Shown piece by piece: positions 15,421 to 44,352 of a stretch of DNA of 64,000 bases. The DNA comes from Ylistrum balloti (Eukaryota). The stretch covers positions 868,001 to 932,000 of the forward strand of contig NW_026782025.1 of the NCBI RefSeq assembly GCF_031769215.1, given 5' to 3'. The notes beneath the pieces are model-generated. The model was not told the DNA's origin, ran no database searches, and saw nothing but the letters and a program-made list of their open reading frames with translations. Position 1 is the stretch's first letter, and each line of letters opens with the position of its first letter. Position numbers and translations under genes: made by a program.

Positions 15421-18400
15421 ATGTACACTAAAGTCCTCCTCATTTTTATTCTTCTCTGCGTTGGATATGCGAACTCAAATTTTGCCACCCGTCGCAGAAG
15501 GCCACAAAGGCATCACAGGACACATATACCAAATACTCGACCAGCTCCACCACCTGTCACGCGCAAAGTCACGAACCTGTGTGAGAAAGTAGTCGGACAT
15601 GATTTCCTCGCCAACCCTGACGATTGTTCCAGGTACATATTGTGTATTGGTACAACGCTTCACGATCTTAGCTGTGGAAATCAGGTCTGGGACGACCAGG
15701 ACCGCAAATGTGTTGAGAAAGGCACGACCATAGGTCCCGACCCATGTCAAAAGCGTAAGTATTTAATATATTGCCAAATCCATAGGAATACTCCCATTCT
15801 GAAGGTCGACATTTCATTCTTTTGTTAAGTGAAAATATATCAAGTGCAATTATATTTTCAAACATTTAGAAAATATGTGCTTGAGGTAAAATTACAAGAA
15901 ATTTTGTCCTTGTCACCCCCATGTACCAGTTGAACTTCAAATCAGTAATACTATAGACTATTTTTCACCAGCCAATAAATTTTCAGACAATGTGGCCGAG
16001 TTTGGCAGCTTATCACTAAAGATTATAGTCTGAGCATTTACTATGACGGAGAGACCTACAGGGATTCTGGAGATGCATTTTGTTGTAGATACAGTCGCTA
16101 TCATTGTCTCCTTGTGAATTATTGTATTCCTTTTTCTGATGTGGCGTTCAATAGATTTGATCCTCAATAACGGTAAGGCTTCTGCCACGTGGTTACGTTA
16201 TTTCCACCCCGATTCTTGCTTTGAGAACCAGGCATTTAAAAGTTGACCCTAATAAAACCAAAGCGCAAGCGATGAAACAAAAGATGCCTACCTTTACAAA
16301 AATAACATGGTTTTATATTCTTGGTAATGAAGTTTGGTTACTTTTTCAATCTTTGTAGATATTCTGTCCTGGTATTATTGTTTTGAATTGTAGATCTTTC
16401 CTCGTTAATGGAAATATGGATGCAAACACTTTGAAATCTAAACCCAAATATTTTCTGGGTATATTCACTCATAAGAAGACGATGAAAGAAATGATGTGAT
16501 AAGACTTGCTAAGATCATCACTGTGGTTCAGATATCATTTTGAATGTGTTTTCATTATCCTTTGTCTATCTTTACAAAAATAATAAGCAAGATCATTTTT
16601 CGTGATATTCACGGGAGTATTTAAATGTTTGAAAGTGCTTCAAAGCAACCCCGCGTTTTAATATTCAGGACATTCCACAAGGCTATGTGAAGATTTCATG
16701 TAAGATTTTGTCTAAAAATATAAGATTATAAAAAACAAAGATAAGATGGATACAGAATCATGGAAGTTGCTTCATCAATTGTATCCACCATGTAAAACTA
16801 TGTCATTCCAACAAATATCACGTTTTCTTAACGAGAACCGTGTCAAAATCAACATATTTAGTTTCGAAAAAAAATTCCCGTGATTATAATATCACCGTGG
16901 TAATCCTAATTTTCTCATAGTCTTCATCAACTTACGTTCCCAATATCCTTTGTTTTTATCACTCATATATTATAACATCTATCATAGAAGTCCTGTCATT
17001 AGGTGAAAGCAGGTCCCTATAATAATCATAATTAAGATTGTATGCCTTTCATATCAAAATGGATTAGATCTCTCATCAAGCCGCTAATGTTGTTTATCAT
17101 TATGTGTTCAAAAACTCATCATAGTACTTTATTAATTAATTAAAGCCTTTTAACCACCATTTATCTAATTCTTTTCTGGTGTGGCTGACGTGGATAGCGC
17201 TATGATCTTCTCGTAACGTCTCCGACAAGGACTTAAATGTAAATGTATTGTAATGACGTGTATTTCCTTGTGTATCTAATTATCAACCATGGTCTGTAAA
17301 ACGCTAATTAGTCAGCATGTCAATCAAAACACTGGCTATATATACTGACTACCAACATATCCTAAACACTGGCTATATATACTGACTAACAACATATCCT
17401 AAACACTGGCTATATATACTGACTACCAACATATCCTAAACACTGGCTATATATACTGACTACCAACATATCCTAAACACTGGCTGTATATACTGACTAC
17501 CAACATATCCTAAACACTGGCTATATATACTGACTACCAACATATCCTAAACACTGGCTATATATACTGACTACCAACATATCCTAAACACTGGTTATAT
17601 ATACTGACTACCAACATATCCTAAACACTGGCTATATATACTGACTACCAACATATCCTAAAAAAACTGGCTATATATACTGACTACCCACATATCCTAA
17701 AACACTGGCTATATATACTGACTACATATCCTAAACACTGGCTATAGATACTGACTACCAACATATCCTACACACTGGCTATATGTACTGACTACATATC
17801 CTAAAAGACTGGTTATATATACTGACTACCAACATATCCTAAACACTGGCTATATATACTGACTACATATCCTAAAGCACTGGCTATATATACTGACTAC
17901 ATATCCTAAAGCACTGGCTATATATACTGACTACCAACATATCCTAAACCCTGGCTATAGATACTGACTCCCAATATATCCTAAAACACTGGTTATATAT
18001 ACTGACTACATATCATAAACACTGGCTATATATACTGACTACCAACATATCCTAAAACACTGGTTATATATACTGACTACCAACATATCCTAAACACTGG
18101 CTATATATACTGACTACATATCCTAAAGCACTGGCTATATATACTGACTAACAACATATCCTAAACACTGGCTATAGATACTGACTCCCAACATATCCTA
18201 AAACACTGGTTATATATACTGACTACCAACATATCCTAAACACTGGCTATATATACTGACTACATATCCTAAAGCACTGGCTATATATACTGACTACCAA
18301 CATATCCTAAACACTGGTTATATATACTGACTACCAACATATCCTAAACACTGGCCTGAACATATCCTAAAGCACTGGCTATATATACTGACTACCAACA

Positions 18401-21400
18401 TATCCTAAACACTGGCTATAGATACTGACTCCCAACATATCCTAAAACACTGGTTATATATACTGACTACATATCATAAACACTGGCTATATATACTGAC
18501 TACCAACATATCCTAAAACACTGGCTATATATACTGACTACCAACATATCCTAAAACACTGGTTATATATACTGACTACCAACATATCCTAAAACACTGG
18601 TTATGAATACTGACTACCAACATATCCTAAAACACTGGTTATAAATACTGACTACCAACATATCCTAAAACACTGGCTATATATACTGACTACATATCCT
18701 AAAGCACTGGTTATATATACTGACTACCAACATATCCTAAACACTGGTTATATATACTGACTACCAACATATCCTACACACTGGCTATATGTACTGACTA
18801 CATATCCTAAAAGACTGGTTATATATACTGACTACCAGCATATCCTAAACACTGGCTATATATACTGACTACATATCCTAAAGCACTGGCTATATATACT
18901 GACTACATATCCTAAAGCACTGGCTATATATACTGACTACCAACATATCCTAAACCCTGGCTATAGATACTGACTCCCAATATGTCCTAAAACACTGGTT
19001 ATATATACTGACTACATATCATAAACACTGGCTATATATACTGACTACCAACATATCCTAAAACACTGGTTATATATACTGACTACCAACATATCCTAAA
19101 CACTGGCTATATATACTGACTACATATCCTAAAGCACTGGCTATAGATACTGACTCCCAACATATCCTAAAACACTGGTTATATATACTGACTACCAACA
19201 TATCCTAAACACTGGCTATAGATACTGACTCCCAACATATCCTAAAGCACTGGCTATATATACTGACTACCAACATATCCTAAACACTGGCTATAGATAC
19301 TGACTCCCAACATATCCTAAAACAATGGTTATATATACTGACTACATATCATAAACACTGGCTATATATACTGACTACCAACATATCCTAAAACACTGGC
19401 TATATATACTGACTACCAACATATCCTAAAACACTGGTTATAAATACTGACTACCAACATATCCTAAAACACTGGTTATAAATACTGACTACCAACATAT
19501 CCTAAAACACTGGTTATAAATACTGTTATAAATACTGACTACCAACATATCCTAAAACACTGGTTATATATACTGACTACCAACATATCCTAAAACACTG
19601 GTTATAAATACTGACTACCAACATATCCTAAAACACTGGTTATAAATACTGACTACCAATATATCCTAAAACACTGGTTATAAATACTGACTACCAACAT
19701 ATCCTACTGACTACCAACATATCCTAAACACTGGTTATATATACTGACTACCAACATATCCTAAAACACTGGCTATATATACTGTCTACCAATATATCCT
19801 AAAACACTGGCTAAACATACTGATTACATATCCTAAACACTGGTTATATATACTGACTACATATCCTAAAACACTGGCTATATATACTGACTACCAACAT
19901 ATCCTAAAACACTGGTTATATATACTGACTACCAACATATCCTAAAATACTGGCTATATACACTGACTGCCAATATATCCTAAAACGCTGGTTACCTATT
20001 GTGTTTACAAACATATCCTAAAAATACTCATAAACACTGATTAATGTAGTTTTTATATGTGGCCAGTGCTTTAAGTTCTGTTAGTAGCACAAAGAAATCA
20101 TAAGACACTAGATTCATACAGTTAGTACAAAAAGGCCCTATACCACATACAACAGTATAAACAGGTCCTAAAAGACTTGGTACATATAGTGAGTTTAAAC
20201 AGTCCTAAAAGACTTGGTACATATAGTGAATATAAACAGTCAGGGTACATATAGTGAGTATAAACAGTCCTAAAAGACTGGGTACATATAGTGAATATAA
20301 ACAGTCAGGGTACATATAGTGAGTATAAACAGTCCTAAAAGACTGGGTACATATAGTGAGTATAAACAGTTCTAAAACACTATGTATATATAGTGTGAGT
20401 ATAAACAGTTCTAAAAGACTTGGTACATATAGTGAGTATAAACAGTCCTAAAAGACTGGGTACATATAGTGAATAACAACAGTCAGGGTACATATAGTGA
20501 GTATAAACAGTCCTAAAAGACTGGGTACATAAAGTGAATATAAACAGTCAGGGTACATATAGTGAGTATAAACAGTCCTAAAACAACAGTCAGGGTACAT
20601 ATAGTGAGTATAAACAGTCCTAAAAGACTGGGTACATATAGTGAGTATAAACAGTCCTAAAAGACTGGGTACATATAGTGAATAACAACAGTCAGGGTAC
20701 ATATAGTGAGTATAAACAGTCCTAAAAGACTGGGTACATATAGAATATAAACAGTGGGTACATATAGTAAAAGAGTACATATATAGTAACTAAAAGACTG
20801 GGTACATATAGTGAATATAAAACACATATGTATATATAGTACATATGTGAGTATAAACAGTTCTAAAAGACTTGGTACATATAGTGAGTATAAACAGTTC
20901 TAAAAGACTGGGTTCATATAGTGAGTATAAACAGTCCTAAAAGACTGGGTTCATATAGTGAGTATAAACAGCCCTAAAATACTGGGTTCATATAGTGAGT
21001 ATAAACAGTCCTAAAAGACTGGGTACATATAGTGAGCATAAACAGTCCTAAAAGACTGGGTTCATATAGTGAGTATAAACAGTCCTAAAAGACTGGGTTC
21101 ATATAGTGAGTATAAACATAAAAGACTGGGTTCATATAGTGAGTATAAACAGTCCTAAAAGACTGGGTTCATATAGTGAGTATAAACAGTCCTAAAAGAC
21201 TGGGTTCATATAGTGAGTATAAACAGTCCTAAAAGACTGGGTTCATATAGTGAGTATAAACAGTCCTAAAAGACTGGGTTCATATAGTGAGTATAAACAG
21301 CCCTAAAAGACTGGGTTCATATAGTGAGTATAAACAGTCCTAAAAGACTGGGTTCATATAGTGAGTATAAACAGTCCTAAATACGATGTTTATAAAATGA

Positions 21401-26499: not shown

Positions 26500-28578
26500 T
26501 AATGGTTTTCAATGGTATTGTTGAGTATGTGATATCTTATACTAAATACCAATAAAGTAATAACACAAGGACTTGTCCGTGATATGTACGTCAATAAAAT
26601 CACAGCGTCAGCAAATTTATTTTTACATGATCGGAAATAAATACACGCTACAATCATTGTTTAGATAGAGCATGTAAGTACTTGGATTTTCCTAGGTTTT
26701 CATTTCAAGTGAAATTGTAGGCACTTATCGTTCCGGTACAATAGTACTGATAGTCCTATATGTATCTCGTTTGTCAATGTTCCTGGCAGTTTCCGTGATT
26801 TATAGAATTATGATTACACATAGGCGATCACATGATTTTCAACGTTGTAAAATTTTAGTCACATTTCGATATTGGATAGCTACTAAAATCCGATCGCCAT
26901 AACGACAATATAACATAGGAGAACGTTAATGATACTTAACTCTTCACTCTGTTTACTACCGTGATAAATACTAAAGATTATTTCTTATTTGTGAAAAATT
27001 ACAGATGAAATATACGTCGTGTTAATACTTAAATTTCTATCTGACAATAAAAATACATCAATTTAGTATTTTGAGGAAATATTGCCAGACCTGTCTTCGT
27101 TTATACAAAGTTTTTTTTTTATAGAATTGGTACTAAATAGGATGCAAAGAGCTTTAAAAGTCCTTCAATTTCACATTTTAAATTTTGAAAACAATTGTAT
27201 TGATTGTGCTTATTGAAATGTAGTAACATAACATGACACTGCACATTTTTCTGCTTAATACACGGCCTTTCTAGCCATATCTCGCGGCACTTTGATTCAG
27301 CCATACTATCTATTTATCAAAAGTGTCTTCATGTAAATATTAGATTGGTCAAACGCGATAATAACTAGCTTGCTTACATTATTCTCTAGTTAGTTTTTTT
27401 TATACAGAATTCGAATCCTCAAAGAGTGTTAAAGCTATTACTTAATTTTATGTAACTAATGTAAAAATATATAGAACAGGTCTAACGTCACGAGGTATAA
27501 CAAAGATATGCATTAAGGAGCGCTAGGTTTGAAGTTTTGGTGAGGAAGGTGTTATTACTTGGTTACACTAGACAGGACATATGTCATATACAAGTAACAC
27601 GACATGAATAAAATAGTGGGATGTTTTCATTAACTGTTGTATTCTAACGCCTTTGTAGCCTGTTTAGAATACATATACATTTTAATTAAACACCATTACC
27701 TAACACTATCCTGACCTGAATTATATTTATGTAAACGTGATGTTACATCACTATTAAACACGGATATTGTCGACGTTTCCAATAACCCGTACGACATTGG
27801 TGTAATCATATGCAAATTCGTTTCAAGGTCAAGTAATTAATACTGGTAATTACTAATATGAAGTTGAGTCGTTCACTTTCCAACACGAAGCTGAATCCAA
27901 TAATGAGATTTTTCCAAAATGCATTTGTTACCTATGTATGTGATTAAAATCATAACTGCTTGTTTATTGACACGTATACTTTTGTCAAGTGACTATTGAG
28001 GATTTTCTAACGGTATATGACGGTAATGAATAAAATGTAGATCACAGCAAATTGTATGTCAGTCAGAAAAGTGACTTAAACAAATGTGTTTGTTAGTTAC
28101 AGGTCTTCCGTCTCCATAATTCAATCTATAGCTAGCCATTGTCTCATTACGAACGTGTATGATAAGGCAAACAAATGCTTTATGATGATTCATGATGGAT
28201 CAGATGATATGGTCAATCACCAGCTGTCTAAAAACAACAGGAAAATTCCAACACGCCAATAGAATCTTATTTCAAACGCAATGAAACTATGTGAACAAAA
28301 GAAAAATATACATAGACACCAGAAAAGAAGCATGTAAAATATGAACCAATTTAACAGGTGTTTGTAATGTAAAATTAATTTTTGTTACTGATCGTTGTTA
28401 AAAAAAAAAACACAAAATATTTTTTCATAATAATAACAATTTATTTAATTATGATTAAGCATTCTAAAAACACAAATGCAAATGCAAACAAAAACAAAGC
28501 TATATCTAGTGCAAACAATCTCATAAAAGCTTAGGAAAAAATTAGACGGAGATAAAATAAAACACGGAAAGATAATAT

Positions 28579-32739: not shown

Positions 32740-32910
32740 AAAAGAAATGCCCTTTAATATATCACTATTTTGTGTTAGACTCCTTGTTAATGCACCAAAG
32801 GATGATAGATTCAACTTAACACTGGTATTATGTGGTATGGAGTCGGTTATGTACCTTTTATAGAAACTGACCACTCCTAGGATGACCCCGAAATTCAAAA
32901 AGTACAGGAA

Positions 32911-32918
32911 TGACGTCA
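32911..32918. promoter_or_regulatory. Perfect CRE palindrome TGACGTCA in the divergent B/C promoter interval
   Basis: Consensus CREB/ATF site about 170 bp upstream of the gene B TATA. Function is inferred only. Confidence 0.35.
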
Positions 32919-33829
32919 ATAGATCGTGATGCTGGTATTGCTAGTGGTTATGACACCAGAAACATCCAGAAGCATCTAAATACCCGTATCGGTTAAACAA
33001 AGTGGTGCAAGTTGTACCAATATCATTCATATTTAAAGTTATCCAATCAAGACAGCCCACACTTGGTATAATACGTGATTTAGTGAAGGAAACAGTCGAC
33101 AAACATTCGTAAAGCATTCTGCAATTATTGATATCTTACTGTTATCTATCACGTTGAAACTCTCATTAGAATAAAAAATGAAAAAAGCTTATTTATTTTT
33201 CTACAATTACTTTTTCAAATAATTTATTTTGTTTCTCCCATTCCTTTTCTGTTCACCATTCTTTCTCTCTTTATAACACCGTAAATAAATTTAAAATGAA
33301 AACAGGGCGATGTGCGAAGTTCTAAATATATCTACACGTAAATTTTAACGCCCACGAAATTACGGATACCTGGGTATGCATGACCTACCTACCGACACAA
33401 ACTTGTCACGTATTTGTAACATGGTGCACATGAAATGCTAAACTGCCCAGTAGGTGAACGATATAGTGCCAAGTCAATAGTGGCGGACTCACTCTCACGT
33501 GATATGGGAAGGGGCAGATTTAGGGACCCTCCAAGTCGATATCATATCAAGAAAATATGCTAAGTATGTATGTTGATGAAATGTGTAATTCTATTTCCGG
33601 AGATATCAACTGGAGAGGGGGAGGCGAGGGCGAGTTTGTCAACAACGTGGGATCGAGGCGTTCTACTTCGTCATTTCCTGTGACCTGTAAAGTGATTCTT
33701 ATAGCATCATTGCAATTTTGGGATAGTTCTAAAAAGGTATTTATACTGGAACTATCAGACGATGGAGCATAGACTTAAAATTTCTTTAGTGTTCACTGTT
33801 CTGAGGGAAATTTAACAACAGAAATCATC

Positions 33830-35021
33830 ATGAATGGATTTGTTTTACTATCAACTCTCGCGATGGTATCGGCGTTCGAGATAACCAGAGAATGTGAGAG
33901 TAGCACCGGTGTTCAGTGGAAAAAAGACCAGGACGATTGTTCCGTGTTCTATCTGTGTTACAATGGTCGGAAAACTAGATACTACTGTCCTGAAAACATG
34001 GTGACAGATCCAAACAGCCAGAGTTGCGTTCCAAGAGGGTCGACACTGGATAAATGTAGGTATCTCAAAGTAACGTATTGTCAATGAATTGATCTTGAAA
34101 CAGTTATAATTTGTTTTTTAATGGAGCTACTGTTTAATATTTATTAATAGGTTGATATATGATTTTAATTGTGGTTGAATTTTTACAGGCTCTGGAAAAG
34201 GTAAGCCTGTCCCACAATGCAACGCTGCTTTGAAGGAGTCCTGTGCAAGATATATTGCTTGCCCCGTTCCGAAAGAGACGGGGACACCAGTTATACCAGA
34301 GGTACAAGAGTGTCCCTACCCACTACTGTATGACGAGGAGAGTCAGCGGTGTGCCTACCCAGAAACTGTCAAATGTGGAGACAGGACCGAACCCAAGGAT
34401 CCTTGTAAGTACATACACGCTATAAGAAAAGATAGTTGTTATATTTGTGTTCAGTGTTTGTTATGACGATGTAAGTTTAGTTTTAATACACGTAACATGG
34501 GCTCTGGTAATTTTAAATCATATTTCCGGGCTTGTTCATAGAAATATTATATTTTATACTTTCGGTTGATTATTTATCAAGATGAATGTTTGTTAATTAC
34601 AAAACTCGGTTGTTTTTTATGTGCTGATAATCATTGACACTTTACTGTTACATAAGCAATCGGTAATAGGTTTAAAAGACTAAATATCATCAAATGATAT
34701 GAAAACTGCAATAAAATTATAATATATATATATATATTAAAATGTAATAGTAACATATTTGCTCTCTTTTTCACTTTCTTGCACAATCTTACAGGTGATT
34801 ATAAGGCTAACCAGTGTCAGGGTCCTAATTGTGTGCCGTGTAGTGACCGTCACCCAGGTTGTTCCGGACGACCGGACGGACTAAATGTATGGAGCGGGAG
34901 AGAGAAGACTCCTTATTTTGTTGTTTGTCGAGGCGAACGTGTAGTGTACCAGGGTCTGTGTCCCCAGGGCAATAAAGGACAGATATTTGATCCCGAAATA
35001 AAGGGCTGCGCGGATATATAG
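33830..35021 (+). CDS. Gene C: secreted triple CBM14-like chitin-binding protein, 222 aa
   Basis: Exons 33830-34055, 34189-34404 and 34795-35021 with phase-1 GT-AG introns, 669 nt. Signal MNGFVLLSTLAMVSA; DDCSVFYLCYNG..YCPENMVTDP; SCARYIAC..ECPYPLLYDEE; DYKANQC..CVPC..CSGRPDGLNVW..PYFVVC..IFDPEIKGC. Confidence 0.94.
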
Positions 35022-35201
35022 GGAGACATGGAACGCATCTTTGACCAAAAGTGAACGTGTGGACCTGTAGAGCGAACAATTGTAATGAATACATGTTGAA
35101 GTGTAAATGTATTTCGGCAAACCGATATTATATTGATTCTCCACAATGATATTTCTTTTCTGAGATTAAATGTTACACTGTACATTTTTACAACAGTTTG
35201 T

Positions 35202-35207
35202 AATAAA
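35202..35207 (+). terminator. Putative polyadenylation signal of gene C
   Basis: AATAAA 181 nt after the stop, conserved in the homologous 3' UTR of gene D (39079-39084, minus). Confidence 0.6.
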
Positions 35208-37519
35208 AAATGGACTTTATTTCTTTCTGTATTTGTTTTATTTGAAGTGATAATACAATAATCTGACAAAGTTAATATAACAGTGTTATTAATATGACAT
35301 CTGACTTATCGCTTACAATGTTAGAGTTTATGTTGTTGTTCAATATTATGATCATTTCAAACTTTTTCTATCTGACATCACAGATTACAAATTAACATTA
35401 TCAATTACAAAACAATATGACATGATATTGCTGCATAACGAATAACAACATTCAAATAAATATTAATTCTACATCATTTTGTAATTGCTATATCATATTT
35501 ACATATTTTATTCTGCATGGTGAATCAACATCCAATTCTTACTATCAACTATTCCAGTTTATAATTGGTCATTAGTAAGACATCGTTAATTTTTTTCTCA
35601 TTAATAGATTCTAATGACGACCATAGGAGAAATAAAACGATAAGAGGGAAGTCATCTTAAGAAAGAAGGCGACATCTACCATGTAAATAAAATTCAAAAC
35701 GAAAATATTTCTCACACAGAATCAAACTCTTACGTAAAACAGTCAACAGTAAATACGGTGACTCTTGAAAAATGGAAGAACAAAAGTAGACAATGACACG
35801 ATGTCTAGGTGAGGACCGTGTAACTAACATAAATCACCCATGCATGCTAGAAGAATCTACCGATAGCTTGCGTGATGCAATTATGAATGAATTGATTTAA
35901 TCTAGATTAAAAACTAGATCCAATTGAGGCCAACAATGAATAAAATTGTACCACATAGCTGTGTTTCAATGACTCGTGAGTGATGCTAATAGCCTCACGT
36001 TTACATTCTCGTATTCCATCGGCCTGGCGAAGTGAAACCAATTGCAGTAACTGTGGGAGATCATAATGCACTTTTGATACCTAGGAAGCGACTGAGAAAA
36101 GCCAGACATAATCGAAAAAGATGTAAAAAATTAGGTTTGGAGGTACATTACACAATAAATCAATAAGTTTTGTTTTTTAACCTAAATACTTGTATCTGAT
36201 AATGTCAAAATAATGTGAGATAAATGTATATATGCTAAATCGTGCCACTTTCCTAATGTTACTGCAAATGTTACCAACGAAACACAAATGAATTTTACCC
36301 ACAAGAGAGTAGCACCTCAAGTTTAGAATCAGATACAGTAGAGCCAAGATATAAAGCAATCTAAATGATATTGATGAATCGTCCTTGTAAGACTCAACAG
36401 CTTAAATTGTTGAAATGTTGTAACATAGGACGACACTGAGGAAAATCAATAGACGTGAAATGTTAAAATCTAGGTAGGTAGGTGGAAGGGTGGGTGGCTA
36501 GGTCGGTTCATTATCCCCGTAGTTCAATTTTTAGAACGCCAAATACATGTGTATGTATTCTGACACCTGTCACTATTCTTATGAATTTTGAAAAATTGCA
36601 TGCAGTTTATGGCAGACCGTGAAGACGTAAGTCTACCTGCAAAGTCTCAAAAAGCTAAAAAGATTGTACAAAAATGAAGAACACCTTCCTATACAGAATA
36701 AGATACAAAGGAGGAAAACAAAGCATTCAACTGTGTTATATATCAGATCCTTCTAGGATACATCAGTGATGGCGCCAAGAATATAAAAAAGGCTACAAAG
36801 GAAAATCGAAATTGGCAAAAAGCCAAAGTCAGATATATAGATGGAGATGTCACTGTCCTGTGAAGTCAGTAAACTGCTGAATGGTTTAAAATATCGTGTT
36901 TCCGTGTGAATATTCTATACCATGGCTTATTCAATACAAATGTGGGGTTGGTTTTGCGAAGACTCCGGTAACTGTCCCGATTAGCTCCCTTATAGGCCTT
37001 CTTTAATGCTGTCATCAAACATGGTTGCTGGAGTATATAGCAAACCCTGGTCAATTAATTAATTAAATTCGTGAAACATGCTTTTAACCTAAATCAGTTT
37101 ATGTTGTTGAATGTTTTAACAAAATATGCTTATACTTCAAACCTGTGGTCGTTAACAACTACAACATTACTTAGCATTTACCTAGCATGTCGGTTCATAG
37201 TCTCTACAATACAGATGTAGAATACATTTGCAATTTTAAAAGAAAAAACGAGAAAAGTTAAGAAGGGGGACAACTCCTATTAACTTCTACGAAATTCCAC
37301 ATCTTTCTGTTTAATTTGTCATTTTTATTTCTTTTTAACGAATTTAACATTAAGTAAGCAGCTTATCTTCTACCGGTACTAAAGGGTTTTTTAAAATTTT
37401 TTTTAATGGCATCTTTTGGATGTTTTATTCCTTAATGAAAAACCCACCTCATTTCTACCTAACACTCTTATGGCTAGAGCTAACGGAACAGCAGACCGTA
37501 TCACTGTTTTTTCAGTGAT

Positions 37520-38460
37520 TCAAGTGAAACAGCTTTATGATACCTTTGATTTATCATCTAGTACATACTGTTAAACAACAGTATAAATCAAAGGCATCAT
37601 GAAGGTGTTTTGTCCTTGCATGACCCACAATGAATTATGAACAAAAGTTTGTAATGAAAAACGATCTTGAATTTGTATTTGTCTATTGTATAACGCATTT
37701 GAATATGTTTGAAAAGTTTCATAAACTTGTTCCTCTGACACATTTAAGTTTTAGTGTACGACAAGTGGACACGCTTAACGATAAGTACAATTTGTTCCAC
37801 AAAGAAGACACAAGTGAACAGCGCCTATCTTTCAAATATAGAACTGGATGAAGCATACATATATCTAAATATAGATGAGGATGTATAGTCAGCATATATT
37901 TTTTATGATTCGGATAATTTCATAACGTACATGTCTAAATTCTCTGAACCGCACTATCATTAAAATAAAATCAAACTTCAAGGGCAAAAGCCATACCAGG
38001 AGATTCTATCACCTGCAATCCAAAAGGGCTGTATAAAAGACAAAAGCATGCTTTCCACAAAAATCATATATAGATACAGTAAAGTTAAATAAAAGATTTA
38101 ATCTTCTTTACATATGTACAGCTCTTAGATCGTTTTGCGACTCGGAAGTGAGTTGTTCAAGATCAATATCAAATAGAGACAGGAATATTTCAACCTCAGT
38201 CAATAGGGAAATGAACTGAAACGTAATATGTAACGTGTGAGATAAATTAATCTTTGCACATGTACAGTTGTTAGGTCGTTCTGCGACTCGTCCGTGATGC
38301 TAGGGGCCTAAAATATCAGGAAGCGACTGAGAGCAATCTAAATTGTCCAAGATCAATATCAAAATAGAGACAGGAAGCGCAGGATTTCAAAATAGGAAAA
38401 TTCTAAACTCTGCCACTAGGGAAATGAACTAAAACTTAATATATAAGATGTGAGATAAAT
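37520..38460 (+). mobile_element. Degenerate Penelope-like retroelement remnants (RT fragments plus a partially duplicated segment)
   Basis: Broken frames give TFDLSSST (cf. TFDFSTLYT), YLNIDED..FYDSDNF (cf. YLxIDxxG..LYDKRDDF) and GPK.YQEA (cf. GPKYRE). Segment 38100-38250 is repeated at 38250-38460. Confidence 0.5.
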
Positions 38461-39264
38461 CATGACACATATGATAACATTAAAACAGAAAACGTCGATA
38501 TAGCAACATAATGTAACAAAGCAAAAGCAAAACAGAAACCATAGAAAATGTGACGACACCCGACATGTAAATCTTAGTACCAGGAATGCCCTGATCTCAA
38601 ATGAGTGTTCACTATAACGGGACTAACAGGCCTATCAACGCGCATTAAACAAATAGCGTTAATACCAATGAAATCACTATAACGGCCATAATCTTCTTCA
38701 ACCTTCATCTCTTAGAATACTCTCTTTGAGTTTTGGTTTTTGTTTCTTTTGTCAGCTGTCGATATATTGTCCTGAAACCATGATGCTTAATTGTAACTTT
38801 TGATTGCGAGACCTGTAGCATCATAACATTCATGTCAAATAAGCGCACGCTTCATACCAATAACCAAAACAAAGGGGAATAATTTGAAAAAAAATTTTTA
38901 TTACAAAATATTGTAAAGATGTACAGTGTAATTTAATCTCAGTAAACGGAATATCAAGATGGAGAGAATAAATGTAACATCGAAATAAGTCTATACTGTT
39001 ACACGTATTTTTACAATTCTTCACACAAGTCCAAATATCCCTTTAATTCAGGATCAAAGAAAGAAATAGTGTCCATTTTTTATTACAAAATGTTGTAAAT
39101 GTGTACAGTATAACATTTAATATCAGAAAAGAAATATCATTGTGGAGAATCAATATAATATCAGTTTGCCGAAATACATTTACACTTCAACATGTATTCA
39201 TTACAATTGTTCGCTCTACAGGTCCACACGTTCACTTTTGGTCAAAGATGCGTTCCATGTCTCC

Positions 39265-40749
39265 CTATATATCCGTGCAGCCCTTTATCTCGGGATCAAA
39301 GATCCGTCCCTTATTGCCCTGGGGACACAGACCCTGGTACATTACACGTTCGCCTCGACAAACAACAAAATAAGGAGACTTCTCTCTCCCGCTCCATACA
39401 TTAAGACCGTCCGGTCGTCCGGAACAACTGGGGTGACGGGCGCTGCAGGGCACACAATTAGGACCTTGACACTGGTTAGCCTTATAATCACCTGTAAGAG
39501 AGGGAGAGCACATTTTTTACTATAAGTTATAATATCAGGAGTCATGACGGTACATTTAAAAATATAGATCCTATATTCTGTTTCAATCAGGTCATTTTAC
39601 TTCTCGATTCTAGACTGACTAAAACATTAAGTGATTCATTTCATTGTTTTTCTTACTTTTCAATCAATTGTACATTTCACAGAAATGTAGAAGGTTATCT
39701 TTAATGAGTGCCCAGAAGAAATAAGACAATTCTTACGAATCATAGAGCCTTGTAATCGAACAAAACCAGGAAACATTTAGCTCGACATTATTAATAACAA
39801 TCACTTGTCTAAAATATCACTCATCATTTTTCCAAAAGTAAACACTAAATAGGAGAATCATTTTTGGATATCATCATGAGTGTTAAACATATTAACAAAA
39901 TGATTTAAATATATATTTATATCGTCATAACAAACACCGAACACAAATATAACAACTATATTGTCTTATAGAGTGTGTGTACTTACAAGGATCCTTGGGT
40001 TCGGTCCTGTCTCCACATCTGACAGTTTCTGGGTAGGCACACCGCTGATTCTCCTCGTCATACAGTAGTGGGTAGGGACACTCTTTTACCTCTGGTATAA
40101 CTGGTGTCCCCGTCTCTTTCGGAACGGGGCAGGCAATATATCTGGCACAGGACTCCTTCAAAGCAGCGTTGCATTGTGGGACATGTACTTTTTTGTTTGA
40201 GCCTAGAAAATAATGGAAAATCTTAACTTAACACCCGATCTTATTCTTCTTGCGCTTTTTCAGGTGTCCTCATGTAAATCTTTTATCTTTTTCATATTTT
40301 ACCAAAGTTTTATTGAATTTATATTCTGAATCTGTTCACATACTGGTATTTCCTGATGTTTTTGAAAAGGTATCTGTTAAGACTTTCTTTTCTTTCTAAG
40401 GTATTTGAAAGTAAATAAGATTTGTAAATAATGGATTATGAACTATGAAATGAATTATGTTAATTAGCCAAATCATTGTAGGTTAATGTAAGTTCTGTCC
40501 CAATCTGTATAATATTTACTTACATTTGTCCAGCTTCGAGCCTCTTGGCACACAAGCTTTACTGTCGGGATCTGTAACCATGTTTCCGGGGCACGAGTAT
40601 TGAGTGCGGTGTCCATTGTAACAAAGATAGAACACGGAACAATCTGTCGGGTCTTCTTTCCACTCGACACCGGTATTACTCTGACACTCATTACTGACTT
40701 CCAAAGCCGATACGACTGACAGAACTGATAACAAAAACATCACCTTCAT
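39265..40749 (-). CDS. Gene D: secreted triple CBM14-like chitin-binding protein, 222 aa (closest paralogue of C)
   Basis: Minus-strand exons 40749-40524, 40202-39987 and 39491-39265, the same lengths as gene C (226/216/227). Phase-1 GT-AG introns; signal MKVMFLLSVLSVVSA. TATATATA ~80 nt upstream (40825-40834). Confidence 0.94.
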
Positions 40750-42224
40750 ATTGGCAGATTTTCAAAGGCTTTCCGTCTTGTCGTAGTATTTCTTAGTTTG
40801 GTTAATATTTCTGAGCTTGCTTCCTATATATATATTCTGATCAACCCACGAACGTATCGATGATATCATTTTGAACTATTTTGATGATCCCTCTGCCGCC
40901 CACTCTTGTCTATGTGCCCTGTAGTAGTCAAACACGAGACACACGATGATCATTCTGGTTTTTGTTGGCATTTCAACAATTCTCGTGGTCATCTCAGACT
41001 TTACGTCAAAAGGACAGGCTTTCCTAACAACTTTGTGATCGCAGGTATTTAGACTACTCGTGTCGTAATATCAACATTTTTGTTATATCAATATCTCCTC
41101 CCTTCATGTCCCAAACATGGGTGGTTCTTTTACATATTTTGTTTGCCATAACGCACAAACAATGTCCGTGCCTAATTGTGGGTGGTTGTTATAGTGGACT
41201 TTGAACTCAACATTTACCAGACCATTCCAGAAATTTGACTTAGAGATGTAATGTATAGTATAAGACAGAAACATACTTTCGATGCTGTTTAACAGTTAAC
41301 GACACTTAGATCCTTCGAAAAGTGGACTTTTAATAATCAACTGATCATGCTATCGGGACGATAGCATTACAAAGAAAATACTAGATAGTTTTGAAAACAA
41401 TTAATGACAAACTTTTATAAAATGTTATCTTATTACAGAACATAACATTAAGTTGATCCAAGTTTTTTCTAGTAAATTTGAATATAATCATTAAATGTTT
41501 TTAAGGATTTTAAATCAATGTACTTTCGTTATGATTACGGCTATTCAGAACAATTGTAAGGTTCGTGGCAATCCTTCTTTATTTCCGCAATTGAGCATCA
41601 CGGACTGGTCTTAGCAGGATAATATAGTTCTATACATTCCTGTTTAATACAAATTAAATACTCGCTAAAGGTTGTCTTTCACTTGTGTGTTTTGTACAAC
41701 CCTCTTTAGCTCGGCATCCTGTCCCTACATCATGTCGTTTTAATCTTATATAATTATGCCATCAAGGCACTCGACGGAAGTTTTGACTGAGTGTATATTA
41801 AACTCTCGTCGATCTTAAAATTGTCAAAACATACTCTTAACTTATATCTTGAATGGTTGTTGTCGCTGCTTGCTAAAGCTAAACAGCGTAAAACTGCGTG
41901 TCTTAGCTGGCTGTTTTTCAACATTATATATCAGTAGATAAACTGCATTTAACGATGAAGAATTTCCGTTTTATTTCATTTTTAAGAGGGGAAACAACTT
42001 CTGCTATATTCTGAAGTATTTATATTTTTAGATTCCCAAAAATAATCGGTTTGGAAATTGCCTTCTCCTTTTGTTGTTTAATAAAGATGCAAGGAACAAT
42101 CGCTACATTACCATTGTCTTTTCCCAACATAGACTTACAAGTATTTGCTTCCACAATTAATTTATCTTTACTTGGTAGGCATTCTCACCTAACGATCTAT
42201 ATCCAGGATTGATCAAGATTAAAG

Positions 42225-42545
42225 TGGATCTAGAATAAGTGAGATGTGATTAAACAGGGGAAATAAGGGGGCGTTTGATCTAGAAGTAGTGAGATAAGTT
42301 GTTATACGGGGGAGAAGAGGGGGCATTTGATCTAGAAATAGTGAGATAAGATGTTAAGCATTAGAGATAAGGGGATATTTGATCTAGAAATGATGAGATG
42401 TGTGGATAAAAAGGGGCGATAAGGGAGCATTTGACCTAGATATAGTGATATATGTGGTTATACGGGGGAGATGAGGGTGTTTGTGATCTAGAAATAGCGG
42501 GATATGTCGTTATACAAGGGAGATAAGGGGTATGATCTTGAGACT
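42225..42545 (+). repeat. Old degenerate ~52-bp tandem repeat, ~6 copies
   Basis: Recurrent TTTGATCTAGAA..AGTGAGAT..GGGGAGATAAGGGG at roughly 52-bp spacing. Confidence 0.7.
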
Positions 42546-42630: not shown

Positions 42631-44352
42631 TATATACAAGTTATTGTGCCCTCGACAATTGCGTTGTCCATAAATACATACGGGATGTAGAAGGGAGGGT
42701 GATGGGTCTTTATACAAGTTATTGTGCCCTCGACAATTGTGTTGTCCATAAACACATACGGGATGTAGAAGGGAGGGTGATGGGTCTTTATACAAGTTAT
42801 TGTGCCCTCGACAATTGTGTTGTCCATAAACACATACGGGATGTAAAAGTAAGGGGTGATGGGTCTTTATACAAGTTATTGTGCCCTCGACAATTGTGTT
42901 GTCCATAAACAACATATGGGATGTAGAAGGGAGGGTGATGGGTCTTTATACAAGTTATTGTGCCCTCGACAATTGTGTTGTCCATAAACACATATGGGAT
43001 GTAGAAGGGAGGGTGATGGGTCTTTATACAAGTTATTGTGCCCTCGACAATTGTGTTGTCCATTAACACATATGGGATGTAGAAGGGAGGGTGATGGGTC
43101 TTTATACAAGTTATTGTGCCCTCGACAATTGTGTTGTCCATAAACACATACGGGATGTAGAAGGGAGGGTGATGGGTCTTTATACAAGTTATTGTGCCCT
43201 CGACAATGGTGTTGTCCATAAATACATACGGGATGTAGAAGGGAGGGTGATGGGTCTTTATACAAGTTATTGTGCCCTCGACAATTGTGTTGTCCATAAA
43301 TACATACGGGATGTAAAAGTAAGGGGTGATGGGTCTTTATACAAGTTATTGTGCCCTCGACAATTGTGTTGTCCATAAATACATACGGGATGTAGAAGTA
43401 CGGGGTGATGGGTCTTTATACAAGTTATTGTGCCCTCGACAATTGTGTTGTCCATAAATACATACGGGATGTAGAAGGGAGGGTGATGGGTCTTTATACA
43501 AGTTATTGTGCCCTCGACAATTGTGTTGTCCATAAACACATATGGGATGTAGAAGGGAGGGTGATGGGTCTTTATACAAGTTAATGTACACTCGACAATT
43601 GTGTTGTCCATAAACACATACGGGATGTAGGGAGGGTGATGGGAGGGTGACAATGGGTCTTTATACAAGTTATTGTGCCCTCGACAATTGTGTTGTCCAT
43701 AAATACATACGGGATGTAGAAGGGAGGGTGATGGGTCTTTATACAAGTTATTGTGCCCTCGACAATTGTGTTGTCCATAAACACATACGGGATGTAGAAG
43801 GGAGGGTGATGGGTCTATATACAAGTTATTGTGCCCTCGACAATTGTGTTGTCCATAAACACATACGGGATGTAGAAGGGAGGGTGATGGGTCTATATAC
43901 AAGTTATTGTGCCCTCGACAATGGTGTTGTCCATAAACACATACGGGATGTAGAATGCAGGGTGATGGGTCTATATACAAGTTATTGTGCCCTCGACAAT
44001 TGTGTTGTCCATAAATACATACGGGATGTAGAAGTAATGGTTGATGGGTCTTTATACAAGTTATTGTGCCCTCGACAATTGTGTTGTCCATAAACACATA
44101 CGGGATGTAGAAGGGAGGGTGATGGGTCTTTATACAAGTTATTGTGCCCTCGACAATTGTGTTGTCCATAAACACATACGGGATGTAAAAGTAAGGGGTG
44201 ATGGGTCTTTATACAAGTTATTGTGCCCTCGACAATTGTGTTGTCCATAAACACATACGGGATGTAGAAGGGAGGGTGATGGGTCTATATACAAGTTACT
44301 GAGTCCCCCGACAATTGTGTTGTCCATAAAAACATATAGGATGTAGAAGGGA
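42631..44352 (+). repeat. 78-bp minisatellite, ~22 copies, in the D/E divergent intergenic region
   Basis: ACAAGTTATTGTGCC at 42636, 42714, 42792 and onward. Each unit contains GACAA-TTGTG-TTGTC. The 26-codon period explains the many ORFs here. Confidence 0.97.

Follow-up and report, generated by a model that had tools for sequence, protein, structure and literature searches.

The 64,000-nucleotide (nt) stretch of DNA from the scallop Ylistrum balloti that was analysed here, hereafter called the window (RefSeq assembly GCF_031769215.1, contig NW_026782025.1, positions 868,001 to 932,000 of the forward strand; coordinates below count from its first letter unless stated otherwise), contains two adjacent genes, C and D, that are nearly identical in some segments and unalignable in others. 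They lie on opposite strands in convergent orientation (C on the + strand, 33830–35021; D on the − strand, 40749–39265), and each comprises three coding exons that splice to an intact open reading frame (ORF) of 222 amino acids (aa). All introns are of phase 1, with a cysteine codon split across every junction, and our models match, residue for residue, the NCBI entries LOC132546564 (C) and LOC132546562 (D), both annotated as ‘uncharacterized protein’ of Y. balloti. As predicted from their sequences and a fitting cysteine pattern, C and D encode small chitin-binding proteins that consist of three domains and are secreted.

Domains 1 and 2 of both proteins are recognised by the Pfam model PF01607 (CBM_14) with 30.8–33.6 bits against a gathering cut-off of 22.1. 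Domain 3 has no Pfam match, and hhalign found no profile similarity between it and domain 2 (probability 1 %). Its AlphaFold model (mean predicted local distance difference test score, pLDDT, of 80) was compared by Foldseek with the PDB, where the top seven hits are all chitin-binding domains of the CBM14 type, including the CBM14 domain of chitotriosidase, Der p 23, and tachycitin; the matches are weak (E values of 0.05–3, none at or below 0.001), with probabilities of 1.00 and 0.96 for the first two, and thus suggest a CBM14-like fold. A 165-aa relative in the representative library (P0022) has domain 1 fused directly to domain 3 and lacks domain 2, an architecture expected if a symmetric phase-1 exon were lost or skipped.

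When C and D are aligned, identity changes abruptly along the genes. In exon 1, 63 of 226 nt differ (72 % identity) and 49 of 75 aa are identical. The first 20 nt of exon 2 contain 11 differences and the remaining 196 nt only five (97.4 % identity), and the similarity then continues for 82 nt into intron 2 with 10 differences (88 %). The middle of this intron (34487–34786 in C, 39500–39904 in D; 300 versus 405 nt) is unalignable, although it is enclosed by blocks of 93–95 % identity. Exon 3 differs at 16 of 227 nt (93 %), the first 142 nt of the 3′ untranslated region (UTR) at a single site (99.3 %), and the next 65 nt at seven sites, after which the homology ends at 35228/39058, that is, 21 nt past the AATAAA at 35202–35207. 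For the 5′ flank, intron 1, the middle of intron 2, and the 3′ flank, alignments are no better than those of shuffled sequence (z of −1.9 to 1.7). In terms of inverted repeats of at least 120 nt, the window holds exactly three, all of them formed by C and D (Table 1): a pair of 442 nt with 95 % identity around a spacer of 3829 nt, a pair of 279 nt, likewise with 95 % identity, and an outermost pair of 233 nt with 73 %.

The heterogeneity of divergence is significant in Fisher tests of exon 1 versus exon 3 (p 3e-9), exon 3 versus the start of the UTR (p 0.004), and the core of exon 2 versus the start of intron 2 (p 0.0025), all of which are optimistic values, as the block limits were set after the data had been seen. 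Independent of any chosen limits is a permutation test on run length: the longest identical run of C and D, 112 nt inside the 442-nt arm, has a p value of 0.018. A preliminary description of this stretch, based on its letters alone, had counted by hand 49/75 aa in exon 1, 5/196 nt in exon 2, and 16/227 nt in exon 3, which we reproduced exactly. Its estimates of about 70 nt of similarity into intron 2, of one differing site in the first ~140 nt of UTR, and of inverted arms around a 3.8-kb spacer agree closely with the values measured here, and intron 1 and the middle of intron 2, which it had called unalignable, are indeed at the level of shuffled sequence.

Table 1. Positions of the features of genes C and D within the window
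Feature	Position	Strand	Partner	Remarks
C upstream region	32842..33829	+		orthologous to the Pecten Pm_1 upstream region; not alignable with D upstream
C exon 1	33830..34055	+		signal peptide (hydrophobic N-terminus, by eye) and CBM14 domain 1; Pfam CBM_14 E 7e-8
Outermost inverted repeat, C arm	33830..34062		40517–40749	233 nt
C exon 2	34189..34404	+		divergent 20-nt linker, then CBM14 domain 2 (CBM_14 E 1.5e-7); core 34209–34404
Putative conversion block 1, C arm	34208..34486		39905–40183	279 nt; exon 2 core and first 82 nt of intron 2
Putative conversion block 2, C arm	34787..35228		39058–39499	442 nt; from 8 nt before exon 3 through exon 3 and the 3′ UTR to the poly(A) site
C exon 3, coding part	34795..35021	+		domain 3; no Pfam match, fold CBM14-like by structural model
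Putative youngest tract within block 2	35011..35163		~39123–39275	1 difference in 153 nt, including the 112-nt perfect run
C 3′ UTR	35022..35228	+		AATAAA at 35202–35207; homology to D stops at 35228
Non-coding spacer	35229..38889			between the convergent genes; short fragments of dispersed repeats only
Putative relic 3′ UTR	38890..39057	−		second, diverged UTR copy with its own AATAAA; directly downstream of the homogenised UTR of D; 74 % over 153 nt, E 9e-19
D 3′ UTR	39058..39264	−		homogenised copy
D exon 3, coding part	39265..39491	−		domain 3
D exon 2	39987..40202	−		linker and CBM14 domain 2
D exon 1	40524..40749	−		signal peptide and CBM14 domain 1; CBM_14 E 4e-8

The patchiness extends to silent sites. 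Synonymous divergence (dS, after Nei and Gojobori) between C and D amounts to 1.23 in exon 1, 0.046 in the core of exon 2, and 0.237 in exon 3, a roughly 25-fold range, and the ratio of nonsynonymous to synonymous divergence (dN/dS) in exon 1 is 0.18, which indicates purifying selection. Selection alone can therefore not explain the mosaic. Silent and non-coding sites were homogenised together with the coding ones, as seen in the low dS of exons 2 and 3, in the first 82 nt of intron 2, and in the start of the UTR (35022–35137). The latter is nearly identical in C and D and yet shows no conservation with Pecten, which argues for recent copying instead of constraint, and purifying selection was rejected as the cause of the C/D similarity. 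Adjacent to it, the poly(A)-proximal part of the UTR (35138–35208; 39078–39148 in D) is conserved with Pecten 3′ UTRs (75–89 %), and these ~70 nt may represent a regulatory or polyadenylation element.

Profile searches with exon queries recovered the family in Pecten maximus, Argopecten irradians, and Mizuhopecten yessoensis, whose genomic loci were compared and for which per-exon maximum-likelihood trees were built and subjected to approximately unbiased (AU) tests (in the following, Yb_C and Yb_D denote the Y. balloti genes, and Pm, My, and Ai those of Pecten, Mizuhopecten, and Argopecten, respectively). The exons tell conflicting histories. In the DNA tree of exon 1, Yb_C joins Pm_1 of Pecten with a support of 96/93, apart from Yb_D, and a clade of C and D is rejected at p 0.031; the protein tree of the same exon unites Yb_C, Pm_1, and the C-type protein P0158 of Mizuhopecten in a C-lineage clade (91/85). 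In the tree of exon 2, by contrast, Yb_C joins Yb_D (94/99) and orthology of C and Pm_1 is rejected at p 8e-5, as it is in the tree of exon 3 at p 4e-13, where Yb_C and Yb_D are united with 100/99.

The non-coding surroundings side with exon 1. The kilobase upstream of C aligns collinearly with the upstream region of Pm_1 in three matches of 71–74 %, whereas 400 nt upstream of D (40750–41150) align with the upstream flanks of Pm_2, Pm_3, and My_1. By these alignments and trees, the promoter and exon 1 of C have other orthologues in Pecten and Mizuhopecten than those of D, and the C/D duplication would accordingly predate the split of Ylistrum, Pecten, and Mizuhopecten. Synteny beside the neighbouring genes B and E is shared, too. 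Orthologues from different genera show a uniform 77–82 % identity across all three exons (dS 0.7–1.3), whereas C-type and D-type genes within a species share ~74 % in exon 1 but 89–95 % in exons 2 and 3 (dS 0.05–0.3); for Y. balloti itself, exons 2 and 3 of C and D are 93–95 % identical as compared to 77–82 % between species. For this CBM14 cluster, whole-protein trees will thus mis-date duplications and mis-assign orthologues, and exon 1 and the promoter should be used instead.

Comparable mosaics occur in the other genera, each with its own layout. The Pecten locus (LR736844.1, ~24.33–24.38 Mb) contains one C-type and five D-type copies on a single strand with a period of 7–8 kb, in the order A+ B− C+, five D-type copies all +, and then E+. 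Pm_1 and Pm_2 form a three-block mosaic with exon identities of 73.7 %, 91.0 %, and 93.2 % and unalignable introns. Since this mosaic is equally strong in genes arranged in tandem, the inverted layout is not the driver of homogenisation. One of the Pecten D-type copies is labelled LOW QUALITY by NCBI, and another has a split exon 2 match. In Mizuhopecten, whose gene order C+ D− E+ is that of Ylistrum, C-type and D-type genes share 52 of 75 aa in exon 1, 63 of 72 aa in exon 2, and 88.7 % of nt in exon 3. As the D unit is on the + strand in Pecten and on the − strand in the other two genera, it must have been inverted at least once. The 258-aa Mizuhopecten model KP79_PYT12117 (NEDP02005189.1) spans 22 kb and, by its sequence, appears to merge My_1 and My_2, two near-identical copies of the D type with 98 % identity in exon 3; the sequence between these copies includes, at 27399–27616, a fragment that resembles exon 3 but contains stop codons.

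Argopecten (CM084275.1) departs from the other genera in the choice of exons: in its two gene types, exon 1 (88.6 %) and exon 3 (92.8 %) are homogenised, and exon 2 is old (76 %, dS 1.3). Five C/D-like copies are present in mixed orientation (X−, 154+, Y−, Z−, 156+). Ai_Y and Ai_Z belong to different 5′ types and have in common, from exon 3 on, ~2 kb of 3′ flank with 89 % identity. By sequence they are a crossover-type chimera, which indicates that exchange of this kind near exon 3 happens in the family on an evolutionary time scale. Ai_Y additionally carries a frameshift in exon 3. C/D-type copy number thus ranges from 2 to at least 6 between genera and, as far as these alignments go, homogenisation is exon-sized, lineage-specific, and independent of gene orientation.

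The mosaic, its uneven ages, the conflict between exon trees, and the recurrence of the pattern in other genera are all directly observed, and we consider them best explained by C and D being old paralogues whose exons 2 and 3 have been overwritten by recurrent interlocus gene conversion in the Ylistrum lineage, a reading to which we assign a probability of roughly 0.85. Presumably, an old duplication gave rise to two gene lineages, each with its own promoter and first exon, and promoter, exon 1, introns, and flanks then diverged to saturation. Non-allelic repair would subsequently have copied short genomic stretches from one gene to the other in a non-reciprocal manner. One such tract would cover the core of exon 2 together with 82 nt of intron 2, another exon 3 with the 3′ UTR, and a third, younger one of ~150 nt would span the stop codon and the beginning of the UTR (35011–35163). 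These tracts would begin and end where residual homology persists, in conserved exon cores, at the exon 3 splice acceptor, and in the poly(A)-proximal element that is conserved with Pecten. The indel-rich linker with which exon 2 begins and the diverged introns would bring them to a stop. At least two conversion events are needed and three are probable, a number that we infer from the blocks. A reciprocal crossover between inverted copies swaps sequences but does not homogenise them, from which we likewise infer conversion, i. e., non-reciprocal transfer, as the mechanism. Spliced complementary DNA was ruled out as template, because the copied sequence includes 82 nt of intron 2. A hint at the direction of the exon 3/UTR transfer comes from the relic UTR downstream of D (Table 1): D may have received the tract and retained its former UTR further downstream; an older tandem duplication of the UTR would explain this arrangement equally well. 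The preliminary description had likewise favoured recurrent conversion tracts over one duplication, and this view is borne out by the 25-fold range of dS, the distinct promoter orthology, and the per-exon trees with orthologues, which are incongruent between exon 1 and exons 2 and 3 as conversion predicts. What it had named as its possible undoing, positive selection on exon 1 against a background of uniform synonymous divergence, is contradicted by the uneven dS and the dN/dS of 0.18.

Several observations nevertheless weigh against recurrent conversion or at least complicate it. Besides the block limits chosen after inspection, the rejection of a C/D clade in exon 1 is no more than moderate, with a p value of 0.031 for DNA (see above) and of 0.084 for protein (76 columns). 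The relic UTR is also not what a simple homology-anchored tract would leave behind. Furthermore, neutral divergence is ~9 % in block 1 (synonymous and intron sites pooled) and ~15 % in the older part of block 2, values that are not clearly different, and a single event might underlie both blocks, with later turnover in the middle of intron 2. Block 2 runs in Ylistrum and Pecten alike from 8 nt before the exon 3 acceptor into the 3′ UTR and ends in Ylistrum just past the poly(A) signal; this extent, together with the displaced old UTR of D, could point to a transcript-derived template for that tract, a reading that we hold to be unlikely.

As an alternative that involves no conversion, one unequal crossover between tandemly arranged ancestral genes could have produced a chimera with a D-type 5′ and a C-type 3′ part, followed by gene loss and inversion. 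The tandem array of one C-type and five D-type genes in Pecten, the variation in copy number between genera, and the chimeric pair in Argopecten lend this scenario some plausibility, but it would homogenise everything 3′ of the breakpoint, whereas the middles of intron 2 are unalignable between well-conserved blocks; the significant differences between blocks (0.7 %, 2.6 %, and 7 %) point to several events, and the exon-limited mosaic occurs independently in Pecten, so that we regard a single crossover as quite unlikely. A recent inverted duplication with fast divergence of exon 1 and introns, be it by positive selection or by relaxed constraint, would agree with the finding that C and D are mutual closest relatives for all three exons in the Y. 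balloti genome (648.5-Mb assembly searched). It is already contradicted, and accordingly most improbable, given the purifying selection on exon 1 at a dS of 1.23, the orthology of exon 1 and promoter of C and D to different genes elsewhere, and introns that are at random similarity directly beside stretches of 88–99 % identity. Hardly more credible is that the patchy similarity reflects an assembly collapse or a haplotype chimera, because the arms differ at 5 % of their sites and are not identical, the assembly contains the region only once, NCBI annotates both genes, which are intact, and three independent assemblies of other genera show a like mosaic.

A different question is whether the arms sustain a live inversion polymorphism, in which crossovers would flip 35229–39057, swap the 3′ halves of C and D, and bring domain 1 into new combinations with domains 2 and 3. 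The inverted arms (442 and 279 nt, 95 % identity), which lie 3.8–5.4 kb apart and are kept similar by conversion, would offer a substrate; the orientation of the D unit differs between Pecten on the one hand and Ylistrum and Mizuhopecten on the other, Ai_Y and Ai_Z join different 5′ types to a common 3′ flank, and a precedent exists in the flip/flop region of yeast chromosome XIV (PMC9731477). However, the assembly of Y. balloti shows one orientation without an alternative haplotig, the longest perfect match of 112 nt is short for efficient crossover, and the Pecten difference concerns the whole D unit and not the inter-arm spacer. The predicted flip would keep the convergent orientation of the genes, and the rearrangements seen at the genus level are thus other events. 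The modules to be swapped differ by only three and six residues, leaving little diversity and a small functional yield, and the equally strong homogenisation of the tandem Pecten genes makes the inverted layout appear incidental. For these reasons we consider such a polymorphism unlikely, and we would be similarly reluctant to assume that the 3.8-kb spacer, or a 5.4-kb segment including both exon 3s, still flips in Y. balloti populations and generates chimeric C/D alleles. Programmed site-specific inversion of the invertase or shufflon type was rejected as a candidate: between the arms (35229–39057) there is no ORF longer than 73 aa, hence neither a recombinase nor another gene, and the arms themselves are ordinary gene sequence. 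The spacer is not conserved in the compared genera and finds only short matches of 50–200 nt in the rest of the Y. balloti genome.

C and D are part of a larger cluster of seven paralogous three-domain genes that extends from 15565 to 64000 and beyond the end of the window, with the strand switching from each gene to the next (A+ B− C+ D− E+ F− G+); exon 3 of gene G reaches just past the window end (contig coordinates 931959–932183). The cluster comprises three convergent pairs, and repeats at the nucleotide level are found only in the C/D pair. In the representative library, where C and D are collapsed into a 50 % cluster, the hits stayed at or below 58 % identity and included orthologues of B and G. 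The stretch that separates the divergent genes D and E contains two tandem arrays, one at 42227–42530 (52-nt unit, ~6 copies, 73 % matches) and the other at 42633–43500, where the scan ended (78-nt unit, at least 11 copies, 95 % matches, 314-nt higher-order period); GC content and GC skew rise locally at these arrays (0.407 and +0.295, respectively). Within the long intron region of gene A, 18001–20000 shows a strong GC skew of −0.454 along with an AT skew of +0.153.

CBM_14 genes have been discussed in scallops as a family related to biomineralisation that has fewer copies in gliding scallops (PMC10225492). C and D resemble mollusc CBM14 proteins in their domains 1 and 2, which pass the Pfam threshold, in their signal-peptide-like N-terminus and cysteine pattern, and in a copy number that varies between lineages. 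They depart from the norm of this family in domain 3, which the Pfam model misses and which has no profile similarity to domain 2. With regard to gene conversion, we found no paper that describes it for this scallop cluster.

As for the inverted arrangement, the closest parallel is the flip/flop region on chromosome XIV of Saccharomyces, where the inverted-repeat paralogues YNL018C and YNL034W undergo continual homogenisation and recurrent re-inversion (PMC9731477). In both systems, paralogues are arranged as an inverted repeat whose arms are homogenised within species, and the arms of C and D could in principle support inversion. The yeast arms, however, measure 4 kb, are almost identical, and have been observed in both orientations within and between species (PMC9731477), whereas those of C and D are 279–442 nt long and 95 % identical, match perfectly over no more than 112 nt, enclose a 3.8-kb non-coding spacer, and are present in one orientation in the one assembly available.

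Concerted evolution by interlocus gene conversion has long been known, and the C/D pair is a new and clean instance of it that reveals no new mechanism. For clustered paralogues, interlocus (ectopic) conversion and concerted evolution have been reviewed for Drosophila and for Caenorhabditis duplicates (PMC3924832, PMC3966223). As far as the accessible portions of these reviews describe such cases, the scallop genes share with them that the paralogues are older than the species and yet closer to each other within a species than are orthologues between species, that synonymous and non-coding sites are homogenised as well, and that the tracts are short (150–450 nt), sharp-ended, and confined to homologous segments. 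Judged against the same portions, the scallop genes differ in that each exon corresponds to one domain and that the genera homogenise different exons: the one left old is exon 1 in Ylistrum, Pecten, and Mizuhopecten and exon 2 in Argopecten. Homogenisation takes place in convergent, tandem, and divergent layouts alike. Summed up, four scallop genera retain one old pair of gene lineages and each homogenises its own set of exons whatever the orientation, which makes the cluster a compact and well-controlled molluscan case of exon-by-exon concerted evolution and, given its varying copy number and orientation, a locus that could serve the study of non-allelic recombination in bivalves.

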